This document shows positions 1 through 18,845 of a DNA stretch of 18,845 nt, in pieces (within the stretch, counting starts at the first letter, position 1; each line of letters starts with the position of its first letter). The notes beneath the pieces were generated by a model that saw nothing but the letters and a program-made list of their open reading frames with translations, had not been told where the DNA came from and ran no database searches. The DNA is from Paramicrosporidium saccamoebae KSL3 (taxonomy: Eukaryota; Fungi; Cryptomycota), in contig MTSL01000087.1 in assembly GCA_002794465.1 (NCBI GenBank), positions 4,119-22,963 on the forward strand, in the 5' to 3' direction. The translations under genes and the position numbers were made by a program.

Positions 1-224
1 AGGTCCCACTGTCCTCGAGTACTCAGCTAATCGACTCACTCTATTACATCACCTACCAATCTCACTCCGACCGCACCATGATACAAGTCTAGTCAAATAC
101 ATGGGCCTCGTGCCGGTCTTTAGTATTTTTATAAAAATATAATTCATTTTACGCAGATGGCTGGCTGATCAACCTACCCAATAGTAATGGATAAACTTAT
201 AAGATCTAATCTACCAAATGATCG
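1..224 (+). repeat. Partial copy (A) of dispersed intergenic element upstream of ORF 237
   Basis: CACTGTCCTCGAGTACTCAGCTAATC (7-32) versus CACTGTCCTCAAATACCCGACTAATC (16933-16958). TACCAAATGATCG (212-224) is identical to 12268-12280. 16-bp AT palindrome TATTTTTATAAAAATA at 124-139. Confidence 0.7.
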
Positions 225-975: not shown

Positions 976-1402
976 CTATTAAAGTATATGGCATATAGGC
1001 AGCCATCGTTAAATCATCGGATTGTGGGGCCGCTATCTGGGTGAAACCCGCAAGTCACAAGCAAATGCTATCCAACAAATCGGATCATTAACCTCACAGT
1101 TCTATTAAAGTATATGGCATATAGGCAGCCATCGTTAAATCATCGGATTGTGGGGCCGCTATTTGGGTTGGATTTACCATTAGCCAGCGGATACTGCTTA
1201 ACAGAGTTGTATCACTAACCTCACAGTTTTATTAGAGTATATGGCATATAGGCAGCCATCATTAAATCGCCGGGTTGTGAGGCCGCTATATGGGTGAAAT
1301 CCGCAAGCCACAAGCGAATACTATTCAACAAATCAGATCACCAACCTCACAGTGTTATTAGAGTATATGGCATACAGGCAGCCATCATTAAATCACCGGA
1401 TT
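976..1402. repeat. Tandem array of ~126-bp units (3 full copies + 1 partial)
   Basis: Units start at about 976, 1102, 1229 and 1355 (periods 126/127/126). Shared core TATTARAGTATATGGCATAYAGGCAGCCATCRTTAAATC; full units end in AACCTCACAGT. Unit 1 has stops in all six frames. Confidence 0.95.
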
Positions 1403-1450
1403 ACTAGCCTTTCTCCAAAGTCATATCGACGGAAAAATTCTCTACGTCGC

Positions 1451-1515
1451 GGGCGAAAAGAAAACTCATTCACTGCTAATCTTAAAATCGCAGGTCCCTA
1501 CTGTCCTCAAATGAT
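1451..1515 (+). repeat. Partial copy (F) of dispersed intergenic element
   Basis: GGCGAAAAGAAAACTCATTCACTGCTAATCTTA matches 16879-16911. AGGTCCCTACTGTCCTC matches window positions 1-16 (AGGTCCC-ACTGTCCTC) and 16933-16945. Confidence 0.75.
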
Positions 1516-1579: not shown

Positions 1580-2762
1580 TTACACAATCGCAAGTTGCTC
1601 GGTGAGCTGAATAAATCTCTTGTACCGTTCAAATGCAGAAGTGATATAGTCGAATCCTTTATATCCATCATCGACCATGTCCACAGCCTTGATCAGGCAC
1701 CAATGCCCCCAAAACAGCTGCACAGCTGCTGCAAAGACACTAATCTCGTCCATAATTTTGTAAACATCTTCAGGGGGACTCTCCCCGAGGTAGTTTTGGA
1801 GAATCCGGACAATAGTGTCTCTTGATGGATAGTTGGACCAATCGGGTACTTCTGGGGTGGGTGAGTTGTAGTCGTAGCAAAACTCGCTCAAAAAATTGGC
1901 CAAATCGAACCCTCTGAATGTCGGCATCCCATACTCAAAGTCAATGGCAATGACCCCATCTTTTGCATGAAACCTCAGCACATTGCCATGGTGCAAATCA
2001 CAATGAGCAAAGACGACGGGAGAGTCAACTTGTGCAATCCTGCATCTAAGCGTGGGGATAAATTCAGGAGAAAATGCATCCCACAGTTCAATCTTCCTTA
2101 GAATTTCAGCATGATCACTGCTCAACTTTCGTTGCAAGAGGTTCGACATTGAGAGACAAGCCGCAAGACGCCAGGACTCTAAGCGCTCGAGCATGTAATC
2201 CCGATTCTCCCACGTCGTGGCCTCGACGACGTTTGGCAGCATGTTGTGAATTCTCCCCAGACACTTTGAGATCTCTGCACATAGTTCCGGGGACTGAAAC
2301 TCTCGGGCCGACACTGAAGTGCTCGGGATATAGTCCTCGAAACGGCCATTTCCAAACACCCCATACCATTGCGGAATTATGCCGTGCTCGGTTAGCACTA
2401 ACGCCGTCGACTCTTCCAAGTCGCGCTGAAACATCCAATTTGAATTTCCATAGACTCGTAAGAGCAGCCTCTCGGGATGCCAAGTGGCAGATTCTGTATC
2501 CTCCTCAGAGGGCCCGGCACACGAAAGCGTCACAGAAAACACCATGTTAGTCATTGCCGAGCTGATGCGATAGACTTGAATGTCTTGGGCACTTGAATGG
2601 AGCCAAATCCCCAACACGCTCTGAACGAGCGAGAGCACAGCTTCAGCGACCTCGCAGGCGTTTTCAGACTGTAGGACACTAAAAATCATGAGCACCTCAA
2701 ACTAGCAAATACCGAACGTCGGCTGTTATGCAGTCGTTACGGACTATCCCGCTCACTCCCAT
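1580..2762 (-). CDS. Choline/ethanolamine kinase
   Basis: ORF 1580-2695 has SAMTNMVF, LLRVYG, Brenner motif HCDLHHGNVL and IDFEYG. The 5' end is tentative: ATG at 2762 plus a 55-nt GTGAGC..TAG intron (2756-2702), or the in-exon ATG near 2689. Confidence 0.92.
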
Positions 2763-2785: not shown

Positions 2786-3092
2786 TCATGCTAAATGTGC
2801 AATTCGACACTTTTCAGAATGCTCCAGAAGGGTATACTCTGCCAGCGATAGCACCCGTATAACAAGCGCAGAGGGGGCATTACCAGATGGATTTGTGCAC
2901 CACATCTCTACCAGCTCCCCCATCATATACTGTCGTCTCACAGATGTGGCAACGTGGAATTGCACCGTTTCGTCTCCCGAAATGATAGTCAGCATCTCAT
3001 CCTGCGCACTGTATTTAACGACTCTAACGTTCCAGTAAACCATGTCACAAGTACTTTCCGTAAACTTTTGGGCACGGGTCGGGTACTGGCAT
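2786..3092 (-). CDS. TEN1: Ten1-like (CST complex) small OB-fold protein, ~91 aa
   Basis: Exon 3092-3055, 31-nt GT-AG intron 3054-3024, exon 3023-2786 give MPVPDPCPKVYGKVVKYSAQDEMLTIISGDETVQFHV..GELVEMW..ALVIRVLSLAEYTLLE..R. This follows the Ten1 pattern recalled from S. pombe and human (alignment by eye). Confidence 0.6.
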
Positions 3093-3128
3093 GGCGATAA
3101 GAGATTCAGACCGCTGTCCCTGGACAGA

Positions 3129-5297
3129 ATGAGCGAAGGGGCAGGTCGAATTCCAAAACTTGTCATTCCACGGCTTGTCATCAAAACTGCGCATGATGAC
3201 ATTGGGTCCACTATTCAGAGCCACCTAACTGCGTCTGACCATTCTCGACGACTGAGCACGGCCGCACCCAGAGGCACATCGGACTGCATCCCCGTGCGAG
3301 AGCTCTTGTCTAGCATTTGCCAAAAGTGCTACCACGATTTTGAAAATCTCCTGGAAGTGTCGTCTCGAATGAACATTGTAGAAAAGAAGCGTGATGTTTT
3401 GCGCTTGCTTCGTGAACAAAGTGAGCGGTTTGTAAAGCTAGTCTCTCTGACGCGCTGGATTTCTTGGACTGGTGAATTGTCCTCTGCCGAGGCGGTCTGC
3501 GACAAGCTCTTGCTGGTGCAACAGGAGCTACTTGCCATTGCCGATTCCCTTGTACATTCCTCCACCGACGCTCGGCTGATAAAGTACAATTTTGTGTGAT
3601 TACTGGTGCTATTGCTAGACTCCCCCCGCCCGATGTGTCGCAAGTGTTTAATCTTGTCTTTAAACGCCCACTACCCAGCCCTCGCAGCTTGCAGGTACAT
3701 TTTTAGCTATACACCATAACCTACAGCGGCTCTTGTCAGAGACTGACACGCCAGTGAGAGACAAGGAGCTGGAGACTGTGGCGAAATATTACTCTCACAA
3801 AATCAAGGGTGCAGACCAATATTCTTTGACGTTTGGTAACATCGTCCTGCCTTTTTAACGCCTTTAGAAAATGCGACGCTGGTGGCGGAGGATACAACTG
3901 GATGGAAAGTTACCTTGCGTCTGTATCCCACCAACGCTGAGCCTCAATGGTTTGTTGGATCAATCGTGGGACCATGTACTGCCAGTCTATTGATTCTCAC
4001 TTTTTAGCTCAATCTCTTGCCCAGGCTCTGTATCGGCGTTTTTCCTTGGCGTGGGATCCCTCAAATCCAAATCTCCAGCGGCTCTTCAAAGTTATTCGTA
4101 CCATTCCCACCCGCTCTCATCATTACAGGATCGGCCGTAATCGGTAACTATAAGCATGAAATTACATCTGCCATTGACAGGCTCGCAAAAGTCATCGTAG
4201 TGCCAATAAGCACCACTTTGTGTGGGACAATTGTGACCGTGTCCACTGCATGCAATACTTTTCAAAAGCTCTCCTCAGAGATTGATTTGAACACTGGGGA
4301 ATCGGGTTCTCCGTCTTCCGCTGGCTTCCTTTATCAATTTTCACAGCGCCATCTCGCAGATTCTTTGGAAAAACTGGAAGCAATAGCCCTCGACAAGATC
4401 CGCAGCGAAGCATTGCTGGAAAATGTCGTCTGTTGCCAGCAAGAGGGGCATGTAAAGTGTTCATTCTTGGGGTCAGAGTCATTTTTCAGCTTTGATGGCG
4501 ACCATTTAAGATTCACTAGCGGCTCCGAGGCAACTTTAATGAGCACCCGGTCCAGCGAGGGTGATATGGCTGACTATATTTCCCAGTCTTTGATGAAATT
4601 CAGCCGCCAGTGCATGGGTGAGCGTGTTTCCGAATGCTGTCGACCTCTTTTGAAATTGGGCGTTTCTGAACGCTCTGTAGGCCAAGAAATCTTGGCTATG
4701 ACTCTGAGCGACTTTCCTCGGTGCTTTCTCCTGTTTGAGTCTCTCGATAACGGCTCTATTGGGATCCGCTCTCTCTCATACGATTTCTCCCTTGATGGTT
4801 TGAATGACCAACCCATTCCGCTTGGCACAATGGAAAAGGCCGAGTTTTTGCGTGCCTTGTACGAACAAACCTAAAACTGACATTGTAGAGTTGAACAGGA
4901 CATTGCGCCCTTTGAAGGCATTATTTCTCCAGTCTTAAACATACAAATGCTGCGAGCGCTTCAAGAATCAAAGCTCGTGACCAAAGCAGTCGGAACCAAG
5001 TTGGATGTCCTGAATGCGCCAATCTTGTTTCCCGTGGAGCGGTGTCAGATCTCGGCTATATCTGGTGAAATGACAGTACACTCCCTGCCGCTCTTACTGT
5101 AGATTGAACTGTGCCTTGATCCCGAATTTGTGCCGCGAGAATCAGATTTTCCGAGTGGTCCTAACGTAGTTATAGAAACAGATCGAGCTGTGATCCGGCT
5201 CTGCTCTCTCTCAGTCTCGGATGCAATCCAAAAGACTGAAAGAATATCGCTCGAACTTTATGAAGCCACGAGGCAACGATTTACGCTAAAAGTGTAA
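3129..5297 (+). CDS. MED14: Mediator subunit 14 (Rgr1), ~649 aa, 8 exons
   Basis: IPVRELLSSICQKCYHDFENL..EKKRDVLRLL..RFVKLVSLTRW is the Med14 N-terminal signature. Introns 3584-3618, 3695-3726, 3836-3867, 3976-4007, 4098-4128, 4859-4888 and 5076-5102 give one open frame of 1950 nt. Confidence 0.85.
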
Positions 5298-5360: not shown

Positions 5361-5770
5361 TTATTCATTGTCGGATACTAGTCCTATGAGTTTTGCTAGA
5401 AATTATGTGAATATACAAAGACCTTTACAGTAAGAGTACGAGTAGGCAAAACAAATGCCCGAAATAAATCCCGACGTCGCACCCACGAGAAACGGCACGC
5501 TTCGCAACGACCCTAAAAGTTATAATGCAGAAGGGTCAGCATACTTCCTCCCGTATATCCAAAATATGACGGAACAGCTGTAGTAATAGCTATCAAGCCG
5601 TACTCATAGCGGCCAAAGCTGGACACGCATCGCCGAAAAGACGGGTCGGCATCTTGAATTTCATATGGACGCCGACCATTTTCAAACACAATTCCCTTAT
5701 AAATTGGGTGCCTATTCAAGTGGGTTGGGAGAACATCGCCTTTCTGTAGCTTCTCCGCCAGCGGTTCCAT
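5361..5770 (-). CDS. NUXM: NADH:ubiquinone oxidoreductase 20.9/21-kDa accessory subunit (NUXM-like), ~114 aa
   Basis: PYEIQDADPSFRRCVSSFGRYEY matches the family YP(I/V)(I/V)DxxPxFxxVV..F motif. Introns 5544-5513 and 5428-5396 add GFISGICFAYSYSYSKLIGLVSDNE, matching GGFxxAYQxSxxRLxG..N. An alternative start lies at 5791. Confidence 0.8.
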
Positions 5771-5803
5771 TATTCCCTTGGCCAGGGCCATGGAGTTATA
5801 TAG

Positions 5804-5891
5804 CTGTAAAACCATAAAACTATAGGACTGTAAAACTATAGGACTATAGAAATATAGAACTACAGAAGTATAGAACTATAGAACTATGGAA
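5804..5891. repeat. Degenerate 8-bp tandem repeat, 11 units (consensus CTATAGAA)
   Basis: ctgtaaaa ccataaaa ctatagga ctgtaaaa ctatagga ctatagaa atatagaa ctacagaa gtatagaa ctatagaa ctatggaa. Confidence 0.9.
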
Positions 5892-6439
5892 AGGGCTACC
5901 ACTAGGCAACTCTTTGGCGGTTGTGCTACGATCGACATTCCAGAGTCCTATCTTGACGCAAGGTATTTTGCATGACTTGTGTGTGAATCAATCCACTAGT
6001 GAGCTTCGTCAGATACCAGACAATCAAGAAGCTTTTGTTGATAGGTTAAGCGACGCATCTATAATTATAGAGATTGTTGAGCCACCAACAGACGAGAGCG
6101 AGTTATCAAGTCATGTCGAGTACTCTACAAGCCACTACTAACATCCAATCTAGGTACTACATGCAGGATTTGCTCTCAGAGGATAATATCAGCCAAAATA
6201 TGGTATCTAGTGACCTGAAGAGCCCCGTAATGCATACCTTGGGGCCCGTAGGCTCTACCCAAAGCTCTCTACTATCTTTTACACACGCCCTAACACCCGC
6301 TACCTGCATTCAGATGGCGTTAATCCGCATATCCTCTGTAGAAGCTGACATTTTAGTCACAATGAACGGGTCTTCTTCCCGCAATTTCGCCTGTATTGTA
6401 AAATCATTCAACATGCTGGACTGGGCTTTATTTACATAA
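5886..6439 (+). CDS. MOG1: Ran guanine nucleotide release factor Mog1, ~160 aa
   Basis: Introns 5963-5999 and 6120-6153 (the latter with a TACTAAC branch site) give RQLFGG..IPESYLDASELRQIPDNQEAF..SIIIEIVE..MALIRI..DILVTMN..KSFNMLDWALF, the Mog1 signature motifs. Confidence 0.9.
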
Positions 6440-6935: not shown

Positions 6936-7328
6936 ATGGTTAGAATCAGCGTGTTGAACGATACTCTTAAGAGCATTTACAATGCCGAGAAGCGCGGAAA
7001 GCGCCAGGTTCTTGTCCGCCCCGTCTCCAAGGTCGTCATCAAGTTCTTGTCTGTCATGCAAAAGCACGGCTACATTGACGAGTTTGAAATTATTGATGAC
7101 CACCGTGCCGGTAAAATTGTAGTCCACCTGAACGGTCGCCTGAACAAGTGTGGTGTCATCTCTCCCCGCTTTGACGTAAAGCTCCCTGAATTGGAAAACT
7201 GGATCAACAACTTGTTGCCATCTCGCCAGTTTGGATTCATTGTCTTGACCACATCTGCTGGTATTATGGATCATGAAGAGGCTCGCCGCAAGCACACTGG
7301 TGGCAAGATTCTCGGATACTTTTACTAA
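6936..7328 (+). CDS. RPS15A: 40S ribosomal protein uS8 (S15A/S22)
   Basis: 130-aa [50 protein letters not shown], near-identical to eukaryotic S15A/S22. Confidence 0.99.
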
Positions 7329-7632: not shown

Positions 7633-10600
7633 ATGCTCCTGGACTGGATAGATAGTTTGGGGCTCTTGGAGCATGATCCAGGTAGCTTCATCCACATAGC
7701 TCATTAATTATTAGAATCAAATGTGCTACTCTGTTTTCCGCCACCCATTCGCAAGGTCATTATCACCGAGGTAACAAACTACCTGTACCAGTCGAGCACG
7801 GTGGCCGGCATGAACACCAACTCTTCGAGTGCTGCTAGCACCCCTACTGCGCTCGCTACATCACTGGCAGCGGGAAACTTTGGTGGGGCTGCATATGCAG
7901 TCTCGGCAACGACTCCTACCGGACTGGGCTCGGACGGGCTGCAATGCCTCAACAGTCTATTCCATGTGCGTTGGATGATGGAGATTGTCGGACAGGCATT
8001 CACCCTCCCGCTGGAAGACATTAATGTTGCAAGCAATGCGGCTGCCATCTACATTCAGTGGCTAGTCGAGCCAAACAAGAGACCGCTTGCAATTCAAAAG
8101 GCCGACTATGAAACTCGCCAGTGGTTCCTGCAAACCCTCTTTCGCCACATTTCGCTAGTTTTCCAAGCAAAAAAGGTTGACGGGGTGGGTGCCGCAAAGC
8201 CACTGTTGGCTACTCTGGCTAGTAAGCATGTCGAGCTGTGCAAGCTAATGCTGCGTACCCTCTCGCAAACGGCAATGTCGTCCTCTCTTATCACAGATCA
8301 CGAGAGTGGCTCGGCGTTGTCGGGCACTTCCTGGAAGGTCTTGCTACGAGTTCTTCTCGGAGTCACCGATTTTCTCCTCCAAAAACCCAGCCAGCCCTAT
8401 TGCTATCTGTCCGAGGAACTCGGAGAACAGCTCTTGTCCATTCTAATGGAGCTTTGGATGAGATCGCAAATCTTTTCGTCCGAACTTTGGACTCTGCTCA
8501 AGACTCTATATCCACGATGGACCCATCGGATGACCGCCATCACTCAATGGAGTGCCGTGTCTCTGGCCTTGACGCAGCGGGTCACAAAGATTCTGTATGG
8601 ACAGGGCACCTCGGCTGTTGTTTACACTGTGCACTCCAATCTCGTCACATTGGATCTTTCGGATCAATATGCCGTCTATGCTTGGCACCAAGTTTTGCAT
8701 ATTATTGGCAGTCCGAATGGCATGAACCCGCAAATCTTCTTCCGCAGTGTTCTAGGCATGGAAAAGCTCGTGCAAGTGTTCCACTCTATCGGAAACGTTG
8801 AAAATGCCGGAGCCTTGCAGCGCTGTTTCCCCGACGGCAATACCATTCTTCATCTCTTTGGGTCTTGGCTATTTGAAGCCGTCAATCGAGACGCTCTTGA
8901 CTGCGCAGAGGGCCGTGCACAGGCATTTGGTGTACTCTGTCGCATCTTTTCCCACCCCCAACGACGCAACCCATTCTTATCAACGTATCTGCATCAATTC
9001 TATGCCGCTGTCATTGAAGGCCTCAAGGGAGACCTGCTTTCCCTAGTGTTCATCGTTGTCAACTGCGAGGACATTTTCGCGCTCCAGATTCCCGGTGTCC
9101 GCATCCTTGTTGCTCCGTTTGTAAAGTCCCTTCGACGGATCATTCCAAAACTGGAAAAGCCTCTTCGAGTCAGCCTAAACTTGGATGATTTGCGCCGTGC
9201 CTGTTACAAACTCCTCTGCACCATCTTTGGCTTCTGTGATCATTTCGGTAATGCTCTGGTGAGGTGCCTGAGCCCCTCTTTGGAAGGGCTTACTGTCCAA
9301 TCCATCGAGGATGCAGAGACCCCTCGTACCCCTCAGAAGCCTGGAGACGAAGAGTTTGCTGCTCAACTAAAGGCACTATATCGGCCAATTCTCGGGAATT
9401 TGGAGATGGAATCTGGCTCGTTGAGCCATGCCAGATACTGGATTTTCGAAATGTTAGTTTCATCATTCCTAGATGAAAAAGATTCGGGAAATCTTCGCTA
9501 TCTCATCAACTCTCTCACCTCTTTCACCATTGACGATGCGCATCAAACTCCTGGCATAGTTGCAATGGTTGTCGATTTATTGAGGGTGCAGCTTGGGGCT
9601 GGAAAGTGGACCGTGGACGTCTGTCTTGTCGCAATAGAATCTCTTTGTCAATTTTCCGCCTTGGAATCCGTCGTCTCCGAACAAGACCCCAAGGCAGTTC
9701 GTCGACTGGTGCTTTCCTTATGCGAATATTCCCACGCTTTAATCTCGCGGAATAATCTTTCCGTCTTTTTGAAGCCAATCATCTGCACTCTCGATTGTCT
9801 ACTGGACTGGATTATTGGCACCGATTCGTGTTCCCTGTGGTTCTCATCTGACGCAGAATGCCAATCGGCAGTCATCAACCTGTTCACACGAGCCCTCCTC
9901 TATGGAAGAGAATCTGGGAAGCGTAACGAAGGCCAAGAAGTCCACACCTCTCCGGTTGCAAAGTCGGCTGGCGATTCGCGCATTCAGAGTCCCAGCTATT
10001 CGCTTGCTACAAGTCCGTCAATGTCCAGTGTCATGGCGATGCCGATAAAGTCTCTCGAAGGGCAACTTGTCAGCACTGCTGAGATTGCACTTGCCAGACT
10101 CTTACAACATTATGGCTGTGGTCTTTCCAACCCCTTCTTCCCTGTCCACACTTCGTCCCTTTTGAACGAGTGTCTGCTGTTGAATAAGAAATCCGACAGC
10201 GCTTTGGACTTTGTTTCCGGAGGCCCCAGAAAGATTTCTAGCTTGACTAGGGAAGAGCTGCAGGACATGCGATACTTTATTCTCAATGGGAGTACCATTG
10301 TGTGCTTTATCGAGAGGCCCGCGGAAGCTAATCTCAGAGTGGGGCACATGAAGGAAAGCCCAGTGACAGAGTTGGTCGCTCTGCTGCGATCATTCAGTGG
10401 CAAGTCGGCTTGGGAGAGCTCTCTTGTATATACCACAGATTCAGAAAAGTACCGCCAGCTCTTGTCTGTAAGCTCCTTACAAGGCGAAGATCCCACCGGA
10501 AAAGTAGAATTTGATTCCATCAACTCTATCAACGCAACCGTTGACGCAGCCATCGACACAGCCATCAACACTGACCTCTTTGCATGCACAAATCATTTGG

Positions 10601-11919
10601 CCGACTCGTTAAAGGACCAACTTGCCTTGATAGAAGCACACCCAGAGCTCGAGTCGGTATCATTGCAGCTAAATGAGATTGGCCCCGTTTTTAACTCTGA
10701 TGCAGCCGACTCTCGCTTTGCCCGTGATGACAAGCGTGCTCTCAATTATACCTGCATTGAAGGCCTAGCTAGGGAGCAAATCAAAAAGACCAAGAGCGTA
10801 CTTATTCAGGAAGGGGACGCCCTGCGTAGTTACGGGGCAAGACCAACCCCAGCCTTGACTGCTGACTCTCAATACGCTCGTCTGCTGCTGTCACAGCTTG
10901 GCATGGCATCTTTAAAGGCACGCGACTCGGCTTTGAAGCTTCCCAGCTGCATTGAACTGTTGTCTGATTTGGAGATACTCGATTCATTGCCGGAAAGAGA
11001 GACTCTGAGCTGTTCCGTGTTTTACATCAAATCTGGCCGGCTCAGTCTACAGGATATCCTCGATGAGGAAATAGTAAGCAAAGATTATGCCCAGTTTGTT
11101 CGCACGCTTGGCTGGCCCGCAGATCTCAAAAAACATCCCGGCTGGTCGGGCAGTCTGACAAGCAACATTTCCTCTACCATGCCCTACTTTTCCAACAATG
11201 ACATTGAGATTGTCTTTCATGTTCCCTCACTGATGAATCGCAAAGCACTTGAAGATCTGGGTAGCGATTGCAATTCTTCTTGTCGCAGCCACAATTCACC
11301 TCCAGGCAACCATAATCCGCCTCTGGGTAGCCATAATCCGCCTCTGGGTAGCCATAATCCGCCTCCAGGTAGTCATAATCCGTCTCTGGGTAATCAACCT
11401 CCTTGTTGTGTGCATCCGCTTGCGGGCCATGCTTCGGGGCTCTACAAAACTATTGCAAACGACATGGTGAGCATTCTTTGGATTGAAGACTTGGAGGAAA
11501 TGCTTACCCTGCCGAGCAAGTTGCAAACCCGCTCCATTGTCTACATTTGCGTCAGTCCGCTCTCAGACCCCGAGTCTACTGGGTTGTACCGGATTCGCAT
11601 AATGGTCACCAGCGCGGCATCAGTGGCCATGTCCTCTGGAAACGGGCAGAATTCGGTAGCAGGCCAGAGAGGCGATGAGGCTGCTTTTCTGTTCGGTCCA
11701 CTCTTGGATGGAATGATTATCCGGCGTGAATCTTTGGGACGCCTTGTTCGAGAGACAGTCATCTCCAGCTGCCTCTTTTGTCTCTACGGCATCCAAAGCC
11801 AACAAAAGCCACTGGCAAAACGTGCCCAATTTATCCATCACGTGGCAAACAAGTATCGTCTAATGAATCTCACTCCGGCCAAATACTACAACGAGCTAAT
11901 CTACAATGCCGTCTTGTGA
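7633..11919 (+). CDS. RALGAPB: Ral GTPase-activating protein beta subunit-like, ~1417 aa
   Basis: Exon 7633-7681 plus a 33-nt intron (7682-7714) gives MLLDWIDSLG..ESNVLLCFP, similar to the RalGAPB N-terminus. VRWMMEIVGQAFTLPL, ILHLFGSWLFEA and a C-terminal RapGAP-like region (FVRTLGWP..HPGWSG..PYF..EIVFHVPSLM) are also present. Confidence 0.85.
11290..11394 (+). repeat. Coding 21-bp tandem repeat x5 (HNPP[L/P]G[S/N]) inside RalGAP-beta
   Basis: cacaattcacctccaggcaac / cataatccgcctctgggtagc x2 / cataatccgcctccaggtagt / cataatccgtctctgggtaat. Confidence 0.95.
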
Positions 11920-12280
11920 TATGGAAAGTATGATACGTAGATGTACTGTTTTGTAATAGTAAAGACTGTGATTATGAGATATAGGCTGGGGGCTATGAAA
12001 TGTAGGTTGGGACTGTTACGTGGTGTGGTGGGGTGAGAGTATTACCACGGCGGGTCTAAATGTGCGGCAGGGAACTACCAATCAATTGGTATGGATTCGC
12101 CAGCATAGTCTTCAAACGTTAGAGTCAATTTTCCCATCCCATCCCTTGCCTCTGATTCTCATTTCTATATATTGGCACTAACACCCAGCACCCAACACCT
12201 AGGTAAATATTTCATTACCTCACATGACCATGGTGCCAATATAAGTGGGCGACAGAAAATTATTTATTACCAAATGATCG
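11915..12280 (+). repeat. Degenerate pentamer tract plus partial copy (D) of dispersed element
   Basis: G/T-rich tract with ~5-bp period at 11915-12035. GTGGTGGGGTGAGAGTATTACCACGG (12025-12050) resembles GTAGTGGGGATAATACCACGG. TACCAAATGATCG (12268-12280) is identical to 212-224. Confidence 0.6.
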
Positions 12281-12323
12281 CCAGCGTAGTGTGTCAGTCT
12301 TCTGTTTCTCCCCCCTATTGGTA

Positions 12324-12867
12324 TTAGTCAGCCTTGTCTTGTTCTAAAAATTTCCTAAAAATTAAAATCCCATCCCGACGCACCTTCGGGCGCGTAGCAG
12401 CATCTCTTGCTTTCGCTGCACCAAAAGTTTTTCCCTCACACTTTGGTCTTTGGTCCAAGTCTCCGAGTCTACTTTGATTGGGGGCTCTTCAACGAGATCC
12501 GGCAGCAACTTTATCTGGCTCAGGGTGCTCTGAACACGTGAAAAAGTCGCGTTAGATTTACCTGTGCAGTCGGATTTGCGCGCGGCGCCGGTGCTCTGGA
12601 GGGATAACTTGGGCTTATTGTGAGGAGCCTCTCTATTGCAGCCTGTACAGAGCCGCCGCGAACCAGCTCGGACCGAATTACAGATGTTGGAACGTTGGGA
12701 AACATGGTTGATAATTGATTAATGGCTTCGGTCGGTGGAGCGCGAGGCTGCTCAAGCATACGATTATCTAAGCGGTTAACGGAGCACCGTCAGCGGTTAC
12801 TAAATATCCAACGTACAAGGACAATAGTGAGGGCGAGCCCGACAACAACCGGAATAGTCTCGCTCAT
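12324..12867 (-). CDS. CUE1: Cue1-like ERAD factor (N-terminal TM, CUE domain, Ubc7/G2-binding helix), ~149 aa
   Basis: Introns 12800-12768, 12561-12530 and 12383-12355 join the TM segment (IPVVVGLALTIVLVRWIF), the CUE domain (MFPNVP..IRSEL..GSVQAAIERLL) and the U7BR-like W..REKLLVQRKQEMLLRARRKF. Confidence 0.88.
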
Positions 12868-12967: not shown

Positions 12968-14957
12968 ATGGCATCAGTGCGCATAGTCTTTAGATGCTGG
13001 ATTAGGGAGATTCGGCGCCTAAAGCGCGTCTTTTTACTCGTCTGCACCATCATGCTCGTCTCCTGGCTATACACTTGCACTACTACTCCTCCCCGCCTTC
13101 GATTACTGCAATTTTTGTCACACCGAGGCGCACTGAACCAGACGATCGAAAATTATCAGGCTACAAGCCAGAACAAGTATGCGTATGCAACCCTTCTTTG
13201 CGATGATGTCATGACAGACGCAATTAAGGTGCTCATATACTCCCTGAAGAAGAATACCGATTTGCCCTTTCTGCTGCTGGTCCTCCCAGGCGTACAACAG
13301 AGAGAGGAGCTCGTCCAGCTCGGCGCTGAGATTCACGAGATCAGCATGCTCGATTACCCTTTTCGCGTGACTGCAGAGAAAACGGCCATCAACAAAATGT
13401 GTCGTTACAGTAAACTGCACATTTGGAAGTTTATCGAGTACAAGCGAATCATCTACATTGATGTCGACTGTCTTGTGATGCAAAGTTTAGATGGCGCCTT
13501 CAAGTGGCCCGAGTTCAGCGCAGTACGAGATGCTGGAGACACATTCAATACTGGGCTGTTCGTCCTGGAGCCATCTCTGCAGACTTGGGAAAGCATGCGT
13601 GACTCTTACTTTACCGCCCCATCCTATAATCAGGGAGATCAAGGTTTTATTAATTGGTTCTTTCGAAATGCAACAAAAACTGCCCTTCCCGTTCGCTACA
13701 ACACGGTGTGTAAGAATAAAGGCCATGCCACCTGGCCGCTAATGAAGCGCCAGGCCAAGATGATCCATTACACGAGCGAGACGAAACCGTGGAATTTCTT
13801 TGCTTCGCCCCATAAATACTGGCGCCAGAATTTTGACGCCCCCATGTATTACTTGTGGACCCGCACGTTTCGGCACATTTGCCAAAAATTACGAATCGGT
13901 ATGCAAACTGGACCGTGTCTAACACCACATAGATGTGCATGATCCCAAAAAGCCAATGTGGCTCAACATTAAACGGTCGGCGGAGGTTTGTGATCGGTTT
14001 TATGCATCGATTGAAAATAGCGACCTACTTGACGGGCGACGAAATGACAAGATTAGCGTCATATTTACAAAGTGGCGGAACATTAAAACTTTGACAAATG
14101 CGATTCACCATTATCGATTTATTTTGGAGCCGGTCGTGTGTAAGCTGTACATTAGCTGGAATCCCAGCCTTGGAAAGCCGGGAATCGAGCTGACTCGACT
14201 AAAGTTTCTCAAAGAAGGCCCTCCGGTGGAAATAGTCTACCACCGCTACGAATCCACTAGCAATATTTGGAGCCCAATAGCGGGACTGGCTACCAAGGCC
14301 GTCTTCCTTGCTGATGATGAGCACTTGCCGGATCTCGAAAAAATGGAAATTGCATTTGAAACGTGGAAGAATAATCCACAGTCGCTGGTGGGATTCTTTG
14401 CCCGGTATCACACACGACAGAAATTGGTTGACCCATTCCAGGCCGACATGTCCGGGATGGATCCAGCACTGCCATCTGTAAACGTTACCGACGTCCCGAT
14501 ATTACACCAGCCCGTGTCAGTTGTAGACGAACATCATCTATGGATTTACAACATTACCAGTGCTCGAAGACCGCGTCCATACTCGCTGCTTGCTTCACAA
14601 ATGCTCATGATCAATACCGAATATCTCTTTGTCTACTCCTGCCTCCTCCCCGAGAGGATCCATCGTCATATCGATGAGCAAGGAGAGGATTCGGCCGATC
14701 TGGCAATGAATGTAATGATCGCCGGAATGACTGGTTCACGGCCAGTTCTGGTCAAGTCAGACTTTGTCGATCCTGAGAGCGGAAGATTTGTTGGAGAATC
14801 CTGGGCTCTGAATCGAGGACAAATACTGAAAGATCTTGTCCGAATATTCACTGGTGGTACCCGTGACCCTCTACAGTACAACAGTGTTTCAGTGGCACAA
14901 TTTAACAAGATTCCATTCAAGAAACGATCCGTCAAACAATGGAACAAGTATACGTAA
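12968..14957 (+). CDS. Type II membrane GT8-GT64 fusion glycosyltransferase, ~651 aa
   Basis: A 34-nt intron at 13899-13932 (GTATGC..CTAAC..TAG) joins the two ORFs in frame. TM anchor at the N-terminus. GT8 motifs YATLL, YSKLHIW, YIDVD, FNTG, GDQGFIN, HYT..KPW. GT64 motifs FLADDE, AFETW..P..LVGFFARYH, DLAMN. Confidence 0.9.
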
Positions 14958-15014: not shown

Positions 15015-15330
15015 AGACTGTCGCGTAGTGGGGATAATACCACGGATTTTGTCAGGCGGAAAAAGGAGATGGGACGAGAGGAGAATTTCCTCAGTCAATC
15101 CAGCGACCCATTTATAGTCTCACAAATAACATAATCCTTCATCGATTGTTTTGATTATCCCTTCTCCAAACACCCAACTAATCAGTCTTCTACGTCACAC
15201 AGCATATCATTGATTAATTCGGCTCAAATGGCGATCCCACAAGCCATTCCAACCACATTAAGGGTGGCTACCTATAAAGAAGCCACATACTTTAATAAAA
15301 GAGTGTTTCACCCACCAACAGGGTGAAAGA
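15015..15330 (+). repeat. Most complete copy (B) of dispersed intergenic element
   Basis: 15019-15045 matches 16843-16869 at 26/27. 15164-15197 matches 16939-16972 at 26/34. 15215-15297 resembles the reverse complement of the 126-bp tandem unit. It ends in an 8-bp hairpin, TTTCACCC-accaaca-GGGTGAAA (15306-15328). Confidence 0.8.
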
Positions 15331-15386
15331 TGGGGCCATTACTACTACAAATTTCACGACCCCCCGGCTAAACCGAAAGTGCAAGT

Positions 15387-15671
15387 ATGGGTGAAAGTAA
15401 ATTTACTGACAGTGTTCATTATCTTTTAGAGGGCAAAGTACCATACAAAAAAGCTCCCAAGAAGGAAGCAAAGGAACTTGACGAGGTAAATTGCAGCATT
15501 ACAATACCAAAAGTTTATCCTTAGAGCGACATTGAATTCAAGAAAAAGCAGGCCGAGGAAGCCAAAAAGATTAAAGAACTGGCAGAAAAGGCCAAGAAGG
15601 GACCATTAGGTATGCTGCTGTAACATTTGCAAGACTTTGTAGGTGGAAGTGGGATGAAAAAGAGCAAGTAG
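15387..15671 (+). CDS. TMA7: Translation machinery-associated protein 7, 59 aa, 4 exons (missed by ORF track)
   Basis: Introns 15397-15429, 15486-15524 and 15610-15642 give MGEKGKVPYKKAPKKEAKELDESDIEFKKKQAEEAKKIKELAEKAKKGPLGGSGMKKSK. Confidence 0.92.
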
Positions 15672-15742
15672 ACTAAATCTGAATAAATCCGCCATCTCTT
15701 TTGTCGGTTTGATAATAAACATGATTGGGCCGCCTGGCAAGG

Positions 15743-16808
15743 ATGGAACACCCAAAGGATGCCGTGCAGGTCAGATCACCCACCACCCATTCCGCCATGG
15801 TTTTCTACAAAAATTTCATCGCCGGTGGAATCGCTGGTGCACTGTCACGAACAGTCGTGTCGCCGCTAGAGCGTGCAAAGATTTTGTTCCAAGTTCCTCT
15901 AGCCAAGCTGCTAACAATTATATAGGTGCAGAACAGTGCCAGCGTGTCAAATGTTGGCCGAGGGGGCCTTGACAGCATCATTAGAAGCGGCGTTGGCCAA
16001 GAGGGACTCGATTCTTTGGGTAGGACGGCCAGAAACGGCGTCGGTCGGGAGGGGTTTGACTCTCTTGGGAGCACATTTAGAAAGATCCTTCGACAGGATG
16101 GTGTCGTCGGGCTGTTCAAGGGGAACGGGACCAACATTCTCAGAATAGTTCCCTACTCATCCATGCAGTTTGCATCGTACGAGCTCTACTTGAAGGTAAG
16201 CCTAATATCAAGTCCATATAATGTAGCTCCTTTCGCGTAGAGCCGAAGAAATTTCCACACTGCAGAGGCTTTCTGCTGGGGCGTGCGCAGGAATTACCGC
16301 GGCGACATTTACCTATCCATTGGATTTGATCCGAACAAGACTGAGTCTCGTCACCACTTCCAAGTTTGGTGTAGTAGACGGACTGCTAAATGTATATCGC
16401 AACGAAGGCGGAGTCTTTGCTCTATATCGGGGCCTCACGCCCACATTATTGGGGATCGCTCCGCTAGTTGCTGTCAATTTCACCGTGTATGAGCATTTGA
16501 AGCAAAAAGCTCGAGTTATTACGAGATGCAAAGATGTCTCTATACCCGCTCGTCTTGCTTGTGGGGGCATTGCTGGTGCAGTTGCACAGACCATTACATA
16601 CCCCTTAGATGTTTTGCGCCGTAGATTACAGTCAAGCGGACTCTTGGGTTTTAATTACACTGGCATGACTGAAGCAATCGTTCGAATGTACCGAGAAGAG
16701 GGGATATCGTCTTTCTATCGGGGATTGCTACCAAATTATCTAAAGATGGTCCCGGCCATAAGTGTGAGCTTTGTTGTATATGAAACTGTACAGAATTTTT
16801 TGACATAA
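15743..16808 (+). CDS. Mitochondrial carrier (SLC25), YPR011C/SLC25A42/Leu5-like group
   Basis: Introns 15893-15925 and 16196-16226. Three carrier motifs ([30 protein letters not shown]), plus [17 protein letters not shown] and [17 protein letters not shown]. Start at 15743 or 15797. Confidence 0.93.
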
Positions 16809-16839: not shown

Positions 16840-16990
16840 TCGTGTCGCGTAGTGGAGATAATACCACGGCCTAGTTTAGGCGAGAAGAGAAGCTGTTCAC
16901 TGCTAACCCTAGTATAGTATGGATACACATCTCACTGTCCTCAAATACCCGACTAATCCATCCTCTACGCCATAGTCTCATGATCGTTTT
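16840..16990 (+). repeat. Copy (C) of dispersed intergenic element
   Basis: Carries block 1 (16843-16869), block 2 (16878-16911) and block 3 (16933-16958), shared with the copies at 15019, 1451 and 7. Confidence 0.8.
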
Positions 16991-17143: not shown

Positions 17144-18685
17144 ATGCATCTTGTCGTTGCTATATGTATTTTATCGGCTGTTTGGATCAGAGACACAGCT
17201 GCTAGCGTGCCCTCCCGTAGTGCAAAGTCACATCACAGTGGACTGGCTGCAGAGGCTGCGAAAAAGGGAAAAGTGCAAAAGACCCTTGGATATCCATTCA
17301 AGGTGCTAGATGCCAGCCTGGAAATGTCACACAGTAGGGGAAAAGTTGCAGCAAGGTTTTTTTTGAAATTGCTAGAACAGCAAAGGTGGTACGAGGCGAG
17401 TCTCGCGTATCGAGTAGCCGACTGGAATCTCATCTGGGAAAAACTCAAGCCTTACAAAGAAAAAGCTGATGTACATTTGGACAAACATCCAAAAATAGAT
17501 TTTAGCGTGCTTGGATTTGGCTGGCGGACCGAATATCGTATTCTCCGACACAATTATTACGTCAAACGCGAAAAAATTATCCAAAAGTTGCGCAGCGGAG
17601 CCAATATGGAGCTCAAAGAGATACTCAAATCGATCCACGATCCAAGTCTTACTGATCCTCGGCCCGATTGTGTAAAATTGTGGGATGCTGGAGAGGTGCT
17701 AGCCGAAGCTGGACTCTTCAGATTAGCCGTTACCTCAATGGTCGATGCCTGCGGAAAAAGCATGGAGCTAAAACATTTCGCCGTCTTATTAGGCGGCTTT
17801 TCGGTGGGTTTGGAAGATTCGCTTACCCCAAAAAACAAGGATGAGGCACTGTATGCTTTGGGATTGATCACTCAGCTGTTTGGAAAGGAATACCAAGCTT
17901 CATCGGCTCTCCCAGTGGCCCTTTCCAGCTTTCGGGAAGCCCTGAAGCGCGTTCTATCTGATAAACGTCCCAAGCCCCATCCGATCGAAAAGGCTATTTC
18001 TAAATTCCCATACTACCGCAATGGAGATGACATTGATCGAGCACTTGCGGAGGAAGCGAGCGAAATTTTGTGGCAGTCTCGCTCAGAATTTGTTCATTAT
18101 CTACCCCTGATTGAAGATATGTACAAGTCTCAATACCAAAAGGGCGGCTTTGCATTCTACATGGTAACATATTTTCAGAGACAACTAACTTTATAGCACG
18201 CCCGTTTGCTTTCTCAATATTATCATCGTCGGGGCGATCTTTGGAATTCACGGCGATGGGGAGGTGAAGCATTACTGACGCGTCCAAATAAAGCCGAGGA
18301 TGAATGGATGAAACAGTGTGCTCATAAAATTTGCCAGACCGGTGCCATTGAGAGCTATAACTATATTGATTCTGTCAAGGGCCAGAATGCATTTGTTCAA
18401 TTAGAAGCCGATTTAAAGAAATGGAAAGGGTCTCCAAGCTTTACTCCCTTGACAACTAAACATTATGGTCCAACTATACAACTAGATGCTCCTACTGCTC
18501 GCAGTGAAGGCAAGGCATATACCTGGGCAAGAAAGCGTGATCCAAAGGAAAAGGTCCGCAAGCATACTGATGAGAATGAATGGAGAACTCGAGAGAAACG
18601 TGAGCTGCAAGTACTGCCCTTTCCTTCTCCAAAAAATCGACAGAGTCAGAAATTTTCCAACTTGAAAAACATGTTTGGAGGCTAG
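17144..18685 (+). CDS. Secreted orphan protein, ~502 aa, predicted helical, basic C-terminus
   Basis: Signal-peptide-like MHLVVAICILSAVWIRDTAA. A 33-nt phase-0 intron at 18164-18196 (GTAACA..CTAAC..TAG) joins ORFs 17144-18196 and 18206-18685. No family recognised. Confidence 0.7.
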
Positions 18686-18787
18686 GTGTCGATCTAAGCA
18701 ATTATTGTAAATAAAACACTTTTGGCGTGAAAGTTACAAGATTATAGTCCCTAGCCAGTTTAAAAGAGCGCTTTAAGTTGTCGTGTA

Positions 18788-18845
18788 ATGGGTGATGGGA
18801 TGGGATGGGATGGGATGGGATGGGATGGGATGGGATGGGATGGGA
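18788..18845 (+). repeat. (TGGGA)n pentanucleotide tract running to the end of the window
   Basis: 10 perfect TGGGA units at 18796-18845, preceded by a degenerate ATGGGTGA. Confidence 0.97.

Follow-up and report, generated by a model that had tools for sequence, protein, structure and literature searches.

MITEs (miniature inverted-repeat transposable elements) are reported in some microsporidia, e.g. Nosema bombycis. The repeat described here shares several traits with them, being 100-200 bp long, non-coding and intergenic, with conserved termini, a variable interior and decayed or truncated copies. It was found in Paramicrosporidium saccamoebae, a rozellid (Rozellomycota) that lives as an intranuclear parasite of amoebae and whose genome comprises 7.3 Mb with 47% GC, a gene space of 76% and a reported repeat content of 0.53% (mostly simple repeats) (PMC5701793), a picture with which a cryptic family of short degenerate repeats would contrast. 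Standard repeat finders may miss such families in the reduced genomes near the base of the Microsporidia. The repeat is real and constitutes a short, unclassified interspersed repeat that forms a small and degenerate family. Its copies are best read, at a probability of about 0.45, as relics of a lineage-specific, non-autonomous dispersed repeat that is short (about 130-190 bp) and does not code for protein.

Copies of the repeat and a second repeat family

The window, which is the whole stretch of DNA that was analysed, covers 18.8 kb (positions 4119-22963 of contig MTSL01000087.1, assembly GCA_002794465.1), and the repeat search in P. saccamoebae extended over this one 22,963-bp contig, out of 221 scaffolds in the assembly. 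All coordinates are those of the window unless the contig is named. The repeated features are as follows.

1-38, plus strand: copy A, block 3 (tail part), its left side cut by a scaffold gap
977-1402, plus strand: 126-bp unit, tandem x3.4 (Tandem Repeats Finder: period 126, 81% matches)
1444-1514, plus strand: copy B, the GTCGCG start of the head immediately adjoining block 2, which the first half of block 3 follows
12019-12152, plus strand: copy C, degenerate, full-length, blocks in the order of E, in the convergent spacer after the RalGAP gene
15019-15199, plus strand: copy D, head (block 1), weak block 2a, about 49 nt extra, second half of block 3, tail
15211-15297, minus strand: block 4, inverted partial copy of positions 1-77 of the 126-bp unit
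16843-16974, plus strand: copy E, the most complete, with blocks 1, 2 and 3 and the tail
18779-18845, plus strand: fragment F, block-1-like TGTCGTGTAATGGG, then (GGGAT)n x10 to the contig end
18794-18845: (GGGAT)n x10, G-rich strand running toward the contig end, arising from the GGGGAT of the block-1-like sequence

Copies D and E are firm. Their blocks are collinear across some 130 alignment columns (nhmmer E=1e-7; Smith-Waterman z=16 relative to shuffles). The head is identical at 26/27 positions, the tail at 27/36 and the middle at 38/69, and indels amount to 49 nt. A 27-column window of the quality of the D/E head arose in only 123 of 20000 permutations, and the head itself, block 1 at 15019 and 16843, is the sole dispersed pair to reach significance by BLAST alone (E=4.7e-6), which upholds the pairing that had been noticed from the letters. 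A sharp 5' boundary, TGTCGCG, and the tail CTACGYCAYA are common to both copies; the opening bases recur in B, in a head left of the scaffold gap and in F. Copy E begins 35 nt past the stop codon of the mitochondrial carrier gene.

The other copies are weaker. The piece of copy A that lies within the window is identical to E at 23 of 29 positions (4-32 against 16930-16958), with a Smith-Waterman z of 4.6 and an nhmmer E of 0.39 for the truncated piece alone, and local alignment of the A and B spacers with each other gives z=4.3 relative to shuffles. Since a block-1-like TATTGCGCAGTGGAGA matching the head at 13 of 16 positions is found left of the gap, outside the window at contig positions 3947-3962, A is probably a full copy that is broken by the gap. 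Copy B is related to E with an nhmmer E of 0.0035 and z=6.1 (block 2 25/34 and block 3a 14/17 identical); it lacks the rest of block 1, it sits in a convergent spacer, and the junction between GTCGCG and block 2 looks like an internal deletion. The proposed recurrence of block 2 at 1451 and 16878 and of block 3 at 7 and 16933, with half-copies of the latter at 1499 and 15172, holds. Copy C matches model positions 4-137 of E, including TATTACCACGGC at 11 of 12 positions, so that the block-1 form suspected near 12025 does belong to a degenerate collinear copy, albeit at an E of only 0.027; the GT-rich start of C could be a compositional resemblance only. For the form at 18779 in F a match of 12 of 14 nt stands, but it is not significant alone and then becomes (GGGAT)n. 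The spacer of F gives no signal in alignments against shuffles, and its membership is tentative because no nhmmer profile recovers it.

The sequence-only reading had counted at least six copies with the same blocks in the same order and orientation, and had included a fifth block at 212 and 12268. The latter is a chance exact 13-mer, one of several expected (BLAST E=4.4), and its occurrence at 12268 extends into the 3' end of a gene annotated on the minus strand. Order and orientation are as described, with collinear blocks in D, E, B, C and A, all of them sense, but the copies are fewer and weaker than claimed: four or five loci are supported, and six are reached only if the two weakest fragments are counted. 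The tally is two copies that are firm, three that are supported but partial or degenerate, and one fragment that is doubtful. An iterated profile built from A to E found no additional copies on the contig and did not recover a weak minus-strand match at contig positions 1638-1740 (E=0.31).

Mismatches between copies had also been described as mostly transitions. This is true only within the hand-delimited blocks, where transitions outnumber transversions by 35:3; in the unbiased nhmmer columns the numbers are 35:18, which equals the baseline ratio of about 2.15 for orthologous sequence. The excess is due to how the blocks were delimited, and as it vanishes in the unbiased columns a signature resembling RIP or deamination is not supported.

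The 126-bp repeat is a second family, unrelated to the repeat of copies A to F, although both families occupy the same spacers. Its head-to-tail copies at 977-1402 qualify as a tandem (mini)satellite, with one inverted solo fragment besides, and each unit bears a short ATGGC...GCCAT hairpin. The solo fragment is block 4, whose identity as the reverse complement of the unit is confirmed by nhmmer (E=4.4e-7). In block 4 the stem reads GTGGCT/AGCCAC in place of ATGGC/GCCAT, so that relative to the unit one stem pair is altered on both sides from A-T to G-C, which is a single event. The stretch 15205-15330 folds more stably than shuffles (z about -3). Block 4 is adjoined at 15305-15329 by an 8-bp hairpin, TTTCACCC(N7)GGGTGAAA, of which GGGTGAAA recurs in the tandem units; the Rfam match of this hairpin is noise, and the hairpin is absent from the orthologous spacer of the near relative L005.

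Gene map, assembly breaks and orthologous spacers

The gene map draws on Pfam matches, the GenBank gene table and homology to relatives.

Ends at -448 (window numbering), plus strand: orphan protein of 595 aa
237-950, plus strand: orphan protein of 237 aa, uninterrupted open reading frame
1580-2689, minus strand: choline kinase
3042-4874, plus strand: Med14
5455-6439, plus strand: Mog1-like protein
6936-7328, plus strand: ribosomal S8-family protein
7810-11919, plus strand: RalGAP-like protein
about 12272-12867, minus strand: CUE protein
13052-13942, plus strand: GT8
13956-14957, plus strand: GT64
15387-15670, plus strand: TMA7, three introns of 33-39 nt, absent from the GenBank annotation
about 15709-16808, plus strand: mitochondrial carrier, absent from the GenBank annotation
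17144-18685, plus strand: PSACC_01173

The plus strand carries 10 of the 12 genes. The repeat bears on the annotation in that a GenBank model of 176 aa (291-1514), which spans the 126-bp array, terminates within copy B (last exon, open frame 1392-1514); it is probably a prediction artefact, because its last exon ends inside the copy. Both genes that lie between D and E, TMA7 and the mitochondrial carrier, are unannotated, and at 15947-16570 GenBank instead places an antisense model of 136 aa. The three-intron TMA7 homologue is conserved in the relatives L005 and L001. The reading frame at 237-950 looks like the real gene here, with a start that resembles a signal peptide and with no Pfam match. 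The GT8 and GT64 frames (13052-14957) are 13 nt apart and are fused as one protein in some distant relatives (P0008, P0015-P0017). There is no paralogy among the orphan proteins flanking the repeats that would hint at a co-regulated family.

The repeat also bears on the assembly, where a scaffold gap falls inside copy A and another copy ends the contig. The left end of the window is preceded by a run of 12 G and by 133 N, which make up the gap at contig positions 3964-4118 (L006 12690-12844), and the right end is the contig end, within the (GGGAT)n microsatellite of F. The proposal that the family breaks the assembly is therefore correct insofar as both breaks lie in or beside copies, but the actual break sites are a poly-G run and a pentanucleotide microsatellite. 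The left break is a matter of the homopolymer, and the repeat family is not clearly its cause. The array at the contig end may be either a microsatellite or a telomere repeat with a 5-mer unit, and (GGGAT)n occurs, reversed, at 12132-12147 as well. Encephalitozoon telomeres consist of a 5-mer (PMC12449221).

The sequences used for comparison are metagenome and Logan contigs from a near relative (L005, L007 and L008, 84-96% amino-acid identity; seen in JGI 3300042203 and 3300042204) and from more distant ones (L001-L004 and L041). They are syntenic with most of the window, and synteny with the near relative ends at choline kinase. Neither any of the blocks nor the 126-bp unit was found in 13 kb of near-relative and 45 kb of more distant DNA, and self-comparison of L001 and L007, the largest two of these loci, revealed local tandem repeats only and no dispersed repeats of comparable strength. 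Spacers that are free of copies align with the near relative over 64-100% of their length at 80-83% identity, as against aligned fractions of 7% for the D spacer and 1% for the spacer holding the array and B. The spacer after choline kinase measures 630 bp here and 125 bp in the near relative, which lacks the 126-bp unit there; the D spacer measures 430 bp here and about 295-300 bp in L005 and L001, and a counterpart of D is absent from both of these complete orthologous spacers. Copy E has no significant match in the 421 nt upstream of the orthologue in L041, a stretch that reaches the contig start, and a protein-guided metagenome scan of the E site returned distant carriers only (at most 50% identity). 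The GT64-to-TMA7 spacer that holds D is unalignable among all three taxa, and divergence there consequently does not prove an insertion in P. saccamoebae; the flanks of D, when joined, align to L005 no better than chance, and as the spacers of the relatives cannot be aligned no clean empty site is demonstrable.

What is conserved at the E and D sites lies beside the start codons and amounts to about 96 nt (in L041) and about 30 nt, respectively. At the former this is the core promoter of PSACC_01173 (17040-17143 against L041 320-421; 77% protein identity for the orthologue), which contains two CCAAT/ATTGG motifs (CCAATGA..CATTGTTTACACA and GATTGGCCAAT). At the latter the motif CCCC(G/T)GGC(T/C)A(G)AAC precedes the start codon of TMA7 by about 25 nt (15360-15386; L005 1149-1176; L001 about 11276-11290) and is the sole part of the TMA7 spacer that is conserved across the three taxa. 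The repeat, unlike these stretches adjacent to start codons, is not conserved at orthologous positions in the relatives.

Origin and possible function of the copies

The reading as relics of a dispersed repeat accounts for several observations. There is real homology, with collinear blocks, between D, E, B, C and A; D and E have common ends, and their heads and tails are conserved to a different degree than their middles. The repeat appears to be lineage-specific and its copies appear to lie outside conserved core promoters, judging from the alignments with relatives. The two repeat families occur together in shared spacers, a clustering that mobile DNA shows in compact genomes. The repeat would have been copied several times into gene-free spacers of the contig, possibly as a non-autonomous element of a MITE-like or SINE-like kind that needs only its ends for propagation; a conserved 27-nt head and a tail of about 36 nt around a variable, indel-rich middle are expected if this is so. 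After insertion the copies would have decayed, lost parts (B) or seeded microsatellites (F), and their present role is probably none beyond making the spacers, and perhaps the 3' UTRs, longer. The 126-bp hairpin unit has been amplified in tandem at 977-1402 and has left one inverted fragment beside D. If the copies are such relics, the repeat provides a handle on whether mobile DNA is active now, or was recently, in the lineage.

Against this reading stand the lack of target-site duplications at D and E, a terminal complementarity of only 11/15 and 9/15 and the lack of a poly(A) tail and of a tRNA-like fold. Moreover, every copy lies on one 23-kb contig in one orientation, a distribution that also fits local copying or a function. 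The non-autonomous mobile element that had been proposed from the letters is substantiated as regards a dispersed repeat family at four or five loci, whereas the hallmarks of transposition are either missing (target-site duplications) or weak (terminal complementarity).

A less probable alternative is that patches of sequence spread from spacer to nearby spacer through gene conversion, slippage or templated repair, with neither transposition nor a genome-wide family. All copies fall within 23 kb, D and E being 1.8 kb and A and B 1.4 kb apart, and A and B have in common an AGGTCCC before block 3 that is not present in E or D. A short conversion tract would account for a head that is identical at 26 of 27 positions amid an alignment of 62%, and the missing target-site duplications would find their explanation as well. 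In addition, the published repeat content of only 0.53%, mostly simple, of 7.3 Mb makes a large family unlikely (PMC5701793). However, copying of random patches does not predict the 5' boundary that is shared by D, E, B and the head left of the gap, and the genes flanking the copies are unrelated, from which it follows that the copies were not carried by a segmental duplication. If the phenomenon is only local it is an ordinary curiosity.

About equally improbable is a functional, lineage-specific cis module at gene 3' ends, acting in cleavage, termination or as a roadblock for the upstream gene, perhaps also as an insulator against the next one, in which selection keeps block 1. Every copy is in sense orientation, and block-1 sites begin 35-105 nt past plus-strand stop codons, a spacing that the sequence-only reading had given and that is reproduced with both our own and the GenBank gene models. 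Block 1 is far better conserved than the remainder of the D/E alignment. Yet the D spacers of L005 and L001 lack the module, as do the 421 nt upstream of the E-site orthologue in L041. No copy follows four further plus-strand genes of the contig, and in B, C and F block 1 has either degenerated or been lost. Nor did scans with block-1 patterns yield matches in JGI metagenomes (24-mer), viral contigs (24-mer) or prokaryotic genomes (21-mer). The motif TGTCG occurs 8 times in 7 of the 12 windows downstream of stop codons, where 1.8 occurrences are expected (p=6e-4 before correction), but the enrichment is lost once 693 tests are corrected for and is not seen in the relatives (3 occurrences against 2.1 expected), and TGTCG is not upheld as a general 3' signal across the clade. 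A subset of stop codons, here and in the relatives, is trailed by GT-rich tracts. Such 16-mers (at least 14/16 G+T, e.g. GTGGTGTGGTGGGGTG and GTGGTGTGGGATGTGT) occur in the 120 nt downstream of 4 of the 12 stop codons here and of 4 of 20 in L001, L007, L041 and L005 (all four in L001 and L007), against a background of about 10%, and they may represent a GU-rich downstream element for 3'-end processing.

The terminator-plus-promoter module that had been suggested from the letters fails in its promoter half, since B and C sit in convergent (3'-to-3') spacers and have no downstream plus-strand gene; where there is such a gene, the elements lie upstream of the conserved stretches proximal to the start codon (E site about 96 nt, D site about 30 nt). 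A combination of mobility and function, in which the repeat is a mobile, reusable and lineage-specific gene-boundary module whose 27-nt head, TGTCGCGTAGTGGRGATAATACCACGG, is a putative protein- or RNA-binding site that ends upstream transcription, is improbable and more so than either of the two preceding explanations. If true, it would mean that a very compact rozellid genome has turned mobile DNA into a standard component of its gene boundaries.

The least likely explanation is that the copies are small non-coding RNA genes or pseudogenes, with the A-box-like part of block 1, TCGCGTAGTGG, followed 49 nt downstream by GTTCACTGC as the B box: D, E and the head left of the gap each have a single mismatch to the Pol III A-box consensus TRGCNNAGTGG, their differences hit non-consensus positions and a TATA-like ATATATAAAG is found about 20 nt ahead of D, but the B-box match fails at the invariant A, T-runs are present within D, and neither D nor E folds more stably than shuffles (E z=-1.4). 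Rfam lists nothing in the whole window at E<=1, and focused scans covering the spacers of D and E, the gap region and 4 kb upstream gave nothing at E<=10; no tRNA was detected by ARAGORN, and the Rfam tRNA model has no match at E<=10. U4 snRNA came into consideration through TTGCGCAGTGG and GCTAATC, the head left of the gap having an 11-nt match to the U4 5' end, but alignment to human and yeast U4 is within the range of shuffles and the focused scans gave no Rfam U4 match.

Comparison with known repeat classes

The relic reading leads to the question of which class of mobile element the repeat would come closest to. The termini of E are complementary at 11 of 15 positions (TGTCGCGTAGTGGAG against ATCCTCTACGCCATA) and those of D at 9 of 15, which by our own estimate corresponds to roughly p=0.05 when positional freedom is allowed; the window repeat search does not list this terminal inverted match. 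In the predicted fold of E, GCGTAG at the 5' end pairs with CTACGC at the 3' end, with additional flanking pairs. The flanks of D (ATCAAGAC / CAGCATAT) and of E (TCTCGTCG / GTCTCATG) contain no direct repeat, and neither copy has a poly(A) tail, both as had been stated from the letters; the (GGGAT)n of F extends from the head, not from the tail. In comparison with MITEs, the repeat thus differs in having no target-site duplication, inverted termini of about 10-15 nt that match at only 9-11 of 15 positions, one orientation throughout and no known autonomous partner.

With tRNA-derived SINEs the repeat shares a conserved A-box-like head, a variable body, one 5' boundary and the location of copies in the 3' flanks of genes. 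It departs from them in its poor B box and in that there is no tRNA-like fold, no A-rich or simple-repeat tail and no target-site duplication. As regards solo LTRs, the repeat has a size at the low end of the LTR range and D starts with TGT and ends with ACA. Copy E, however, runs from TGT to ATA, neither copy is flanked by a target-site duplication of 4-6 bp, and the contig is devoid of retroelement genes.

The mosaics of REP and BIME elements in bacteria can be compared by analogy only, as the sequences are unrelated and the host is a eukaryote, with no operons and no Rho-independent termination. What the repeat has in common with them is its architecture, that of a mosaic of short blocks located just past stop codons, next to which the adjoining repeats form hairpins.
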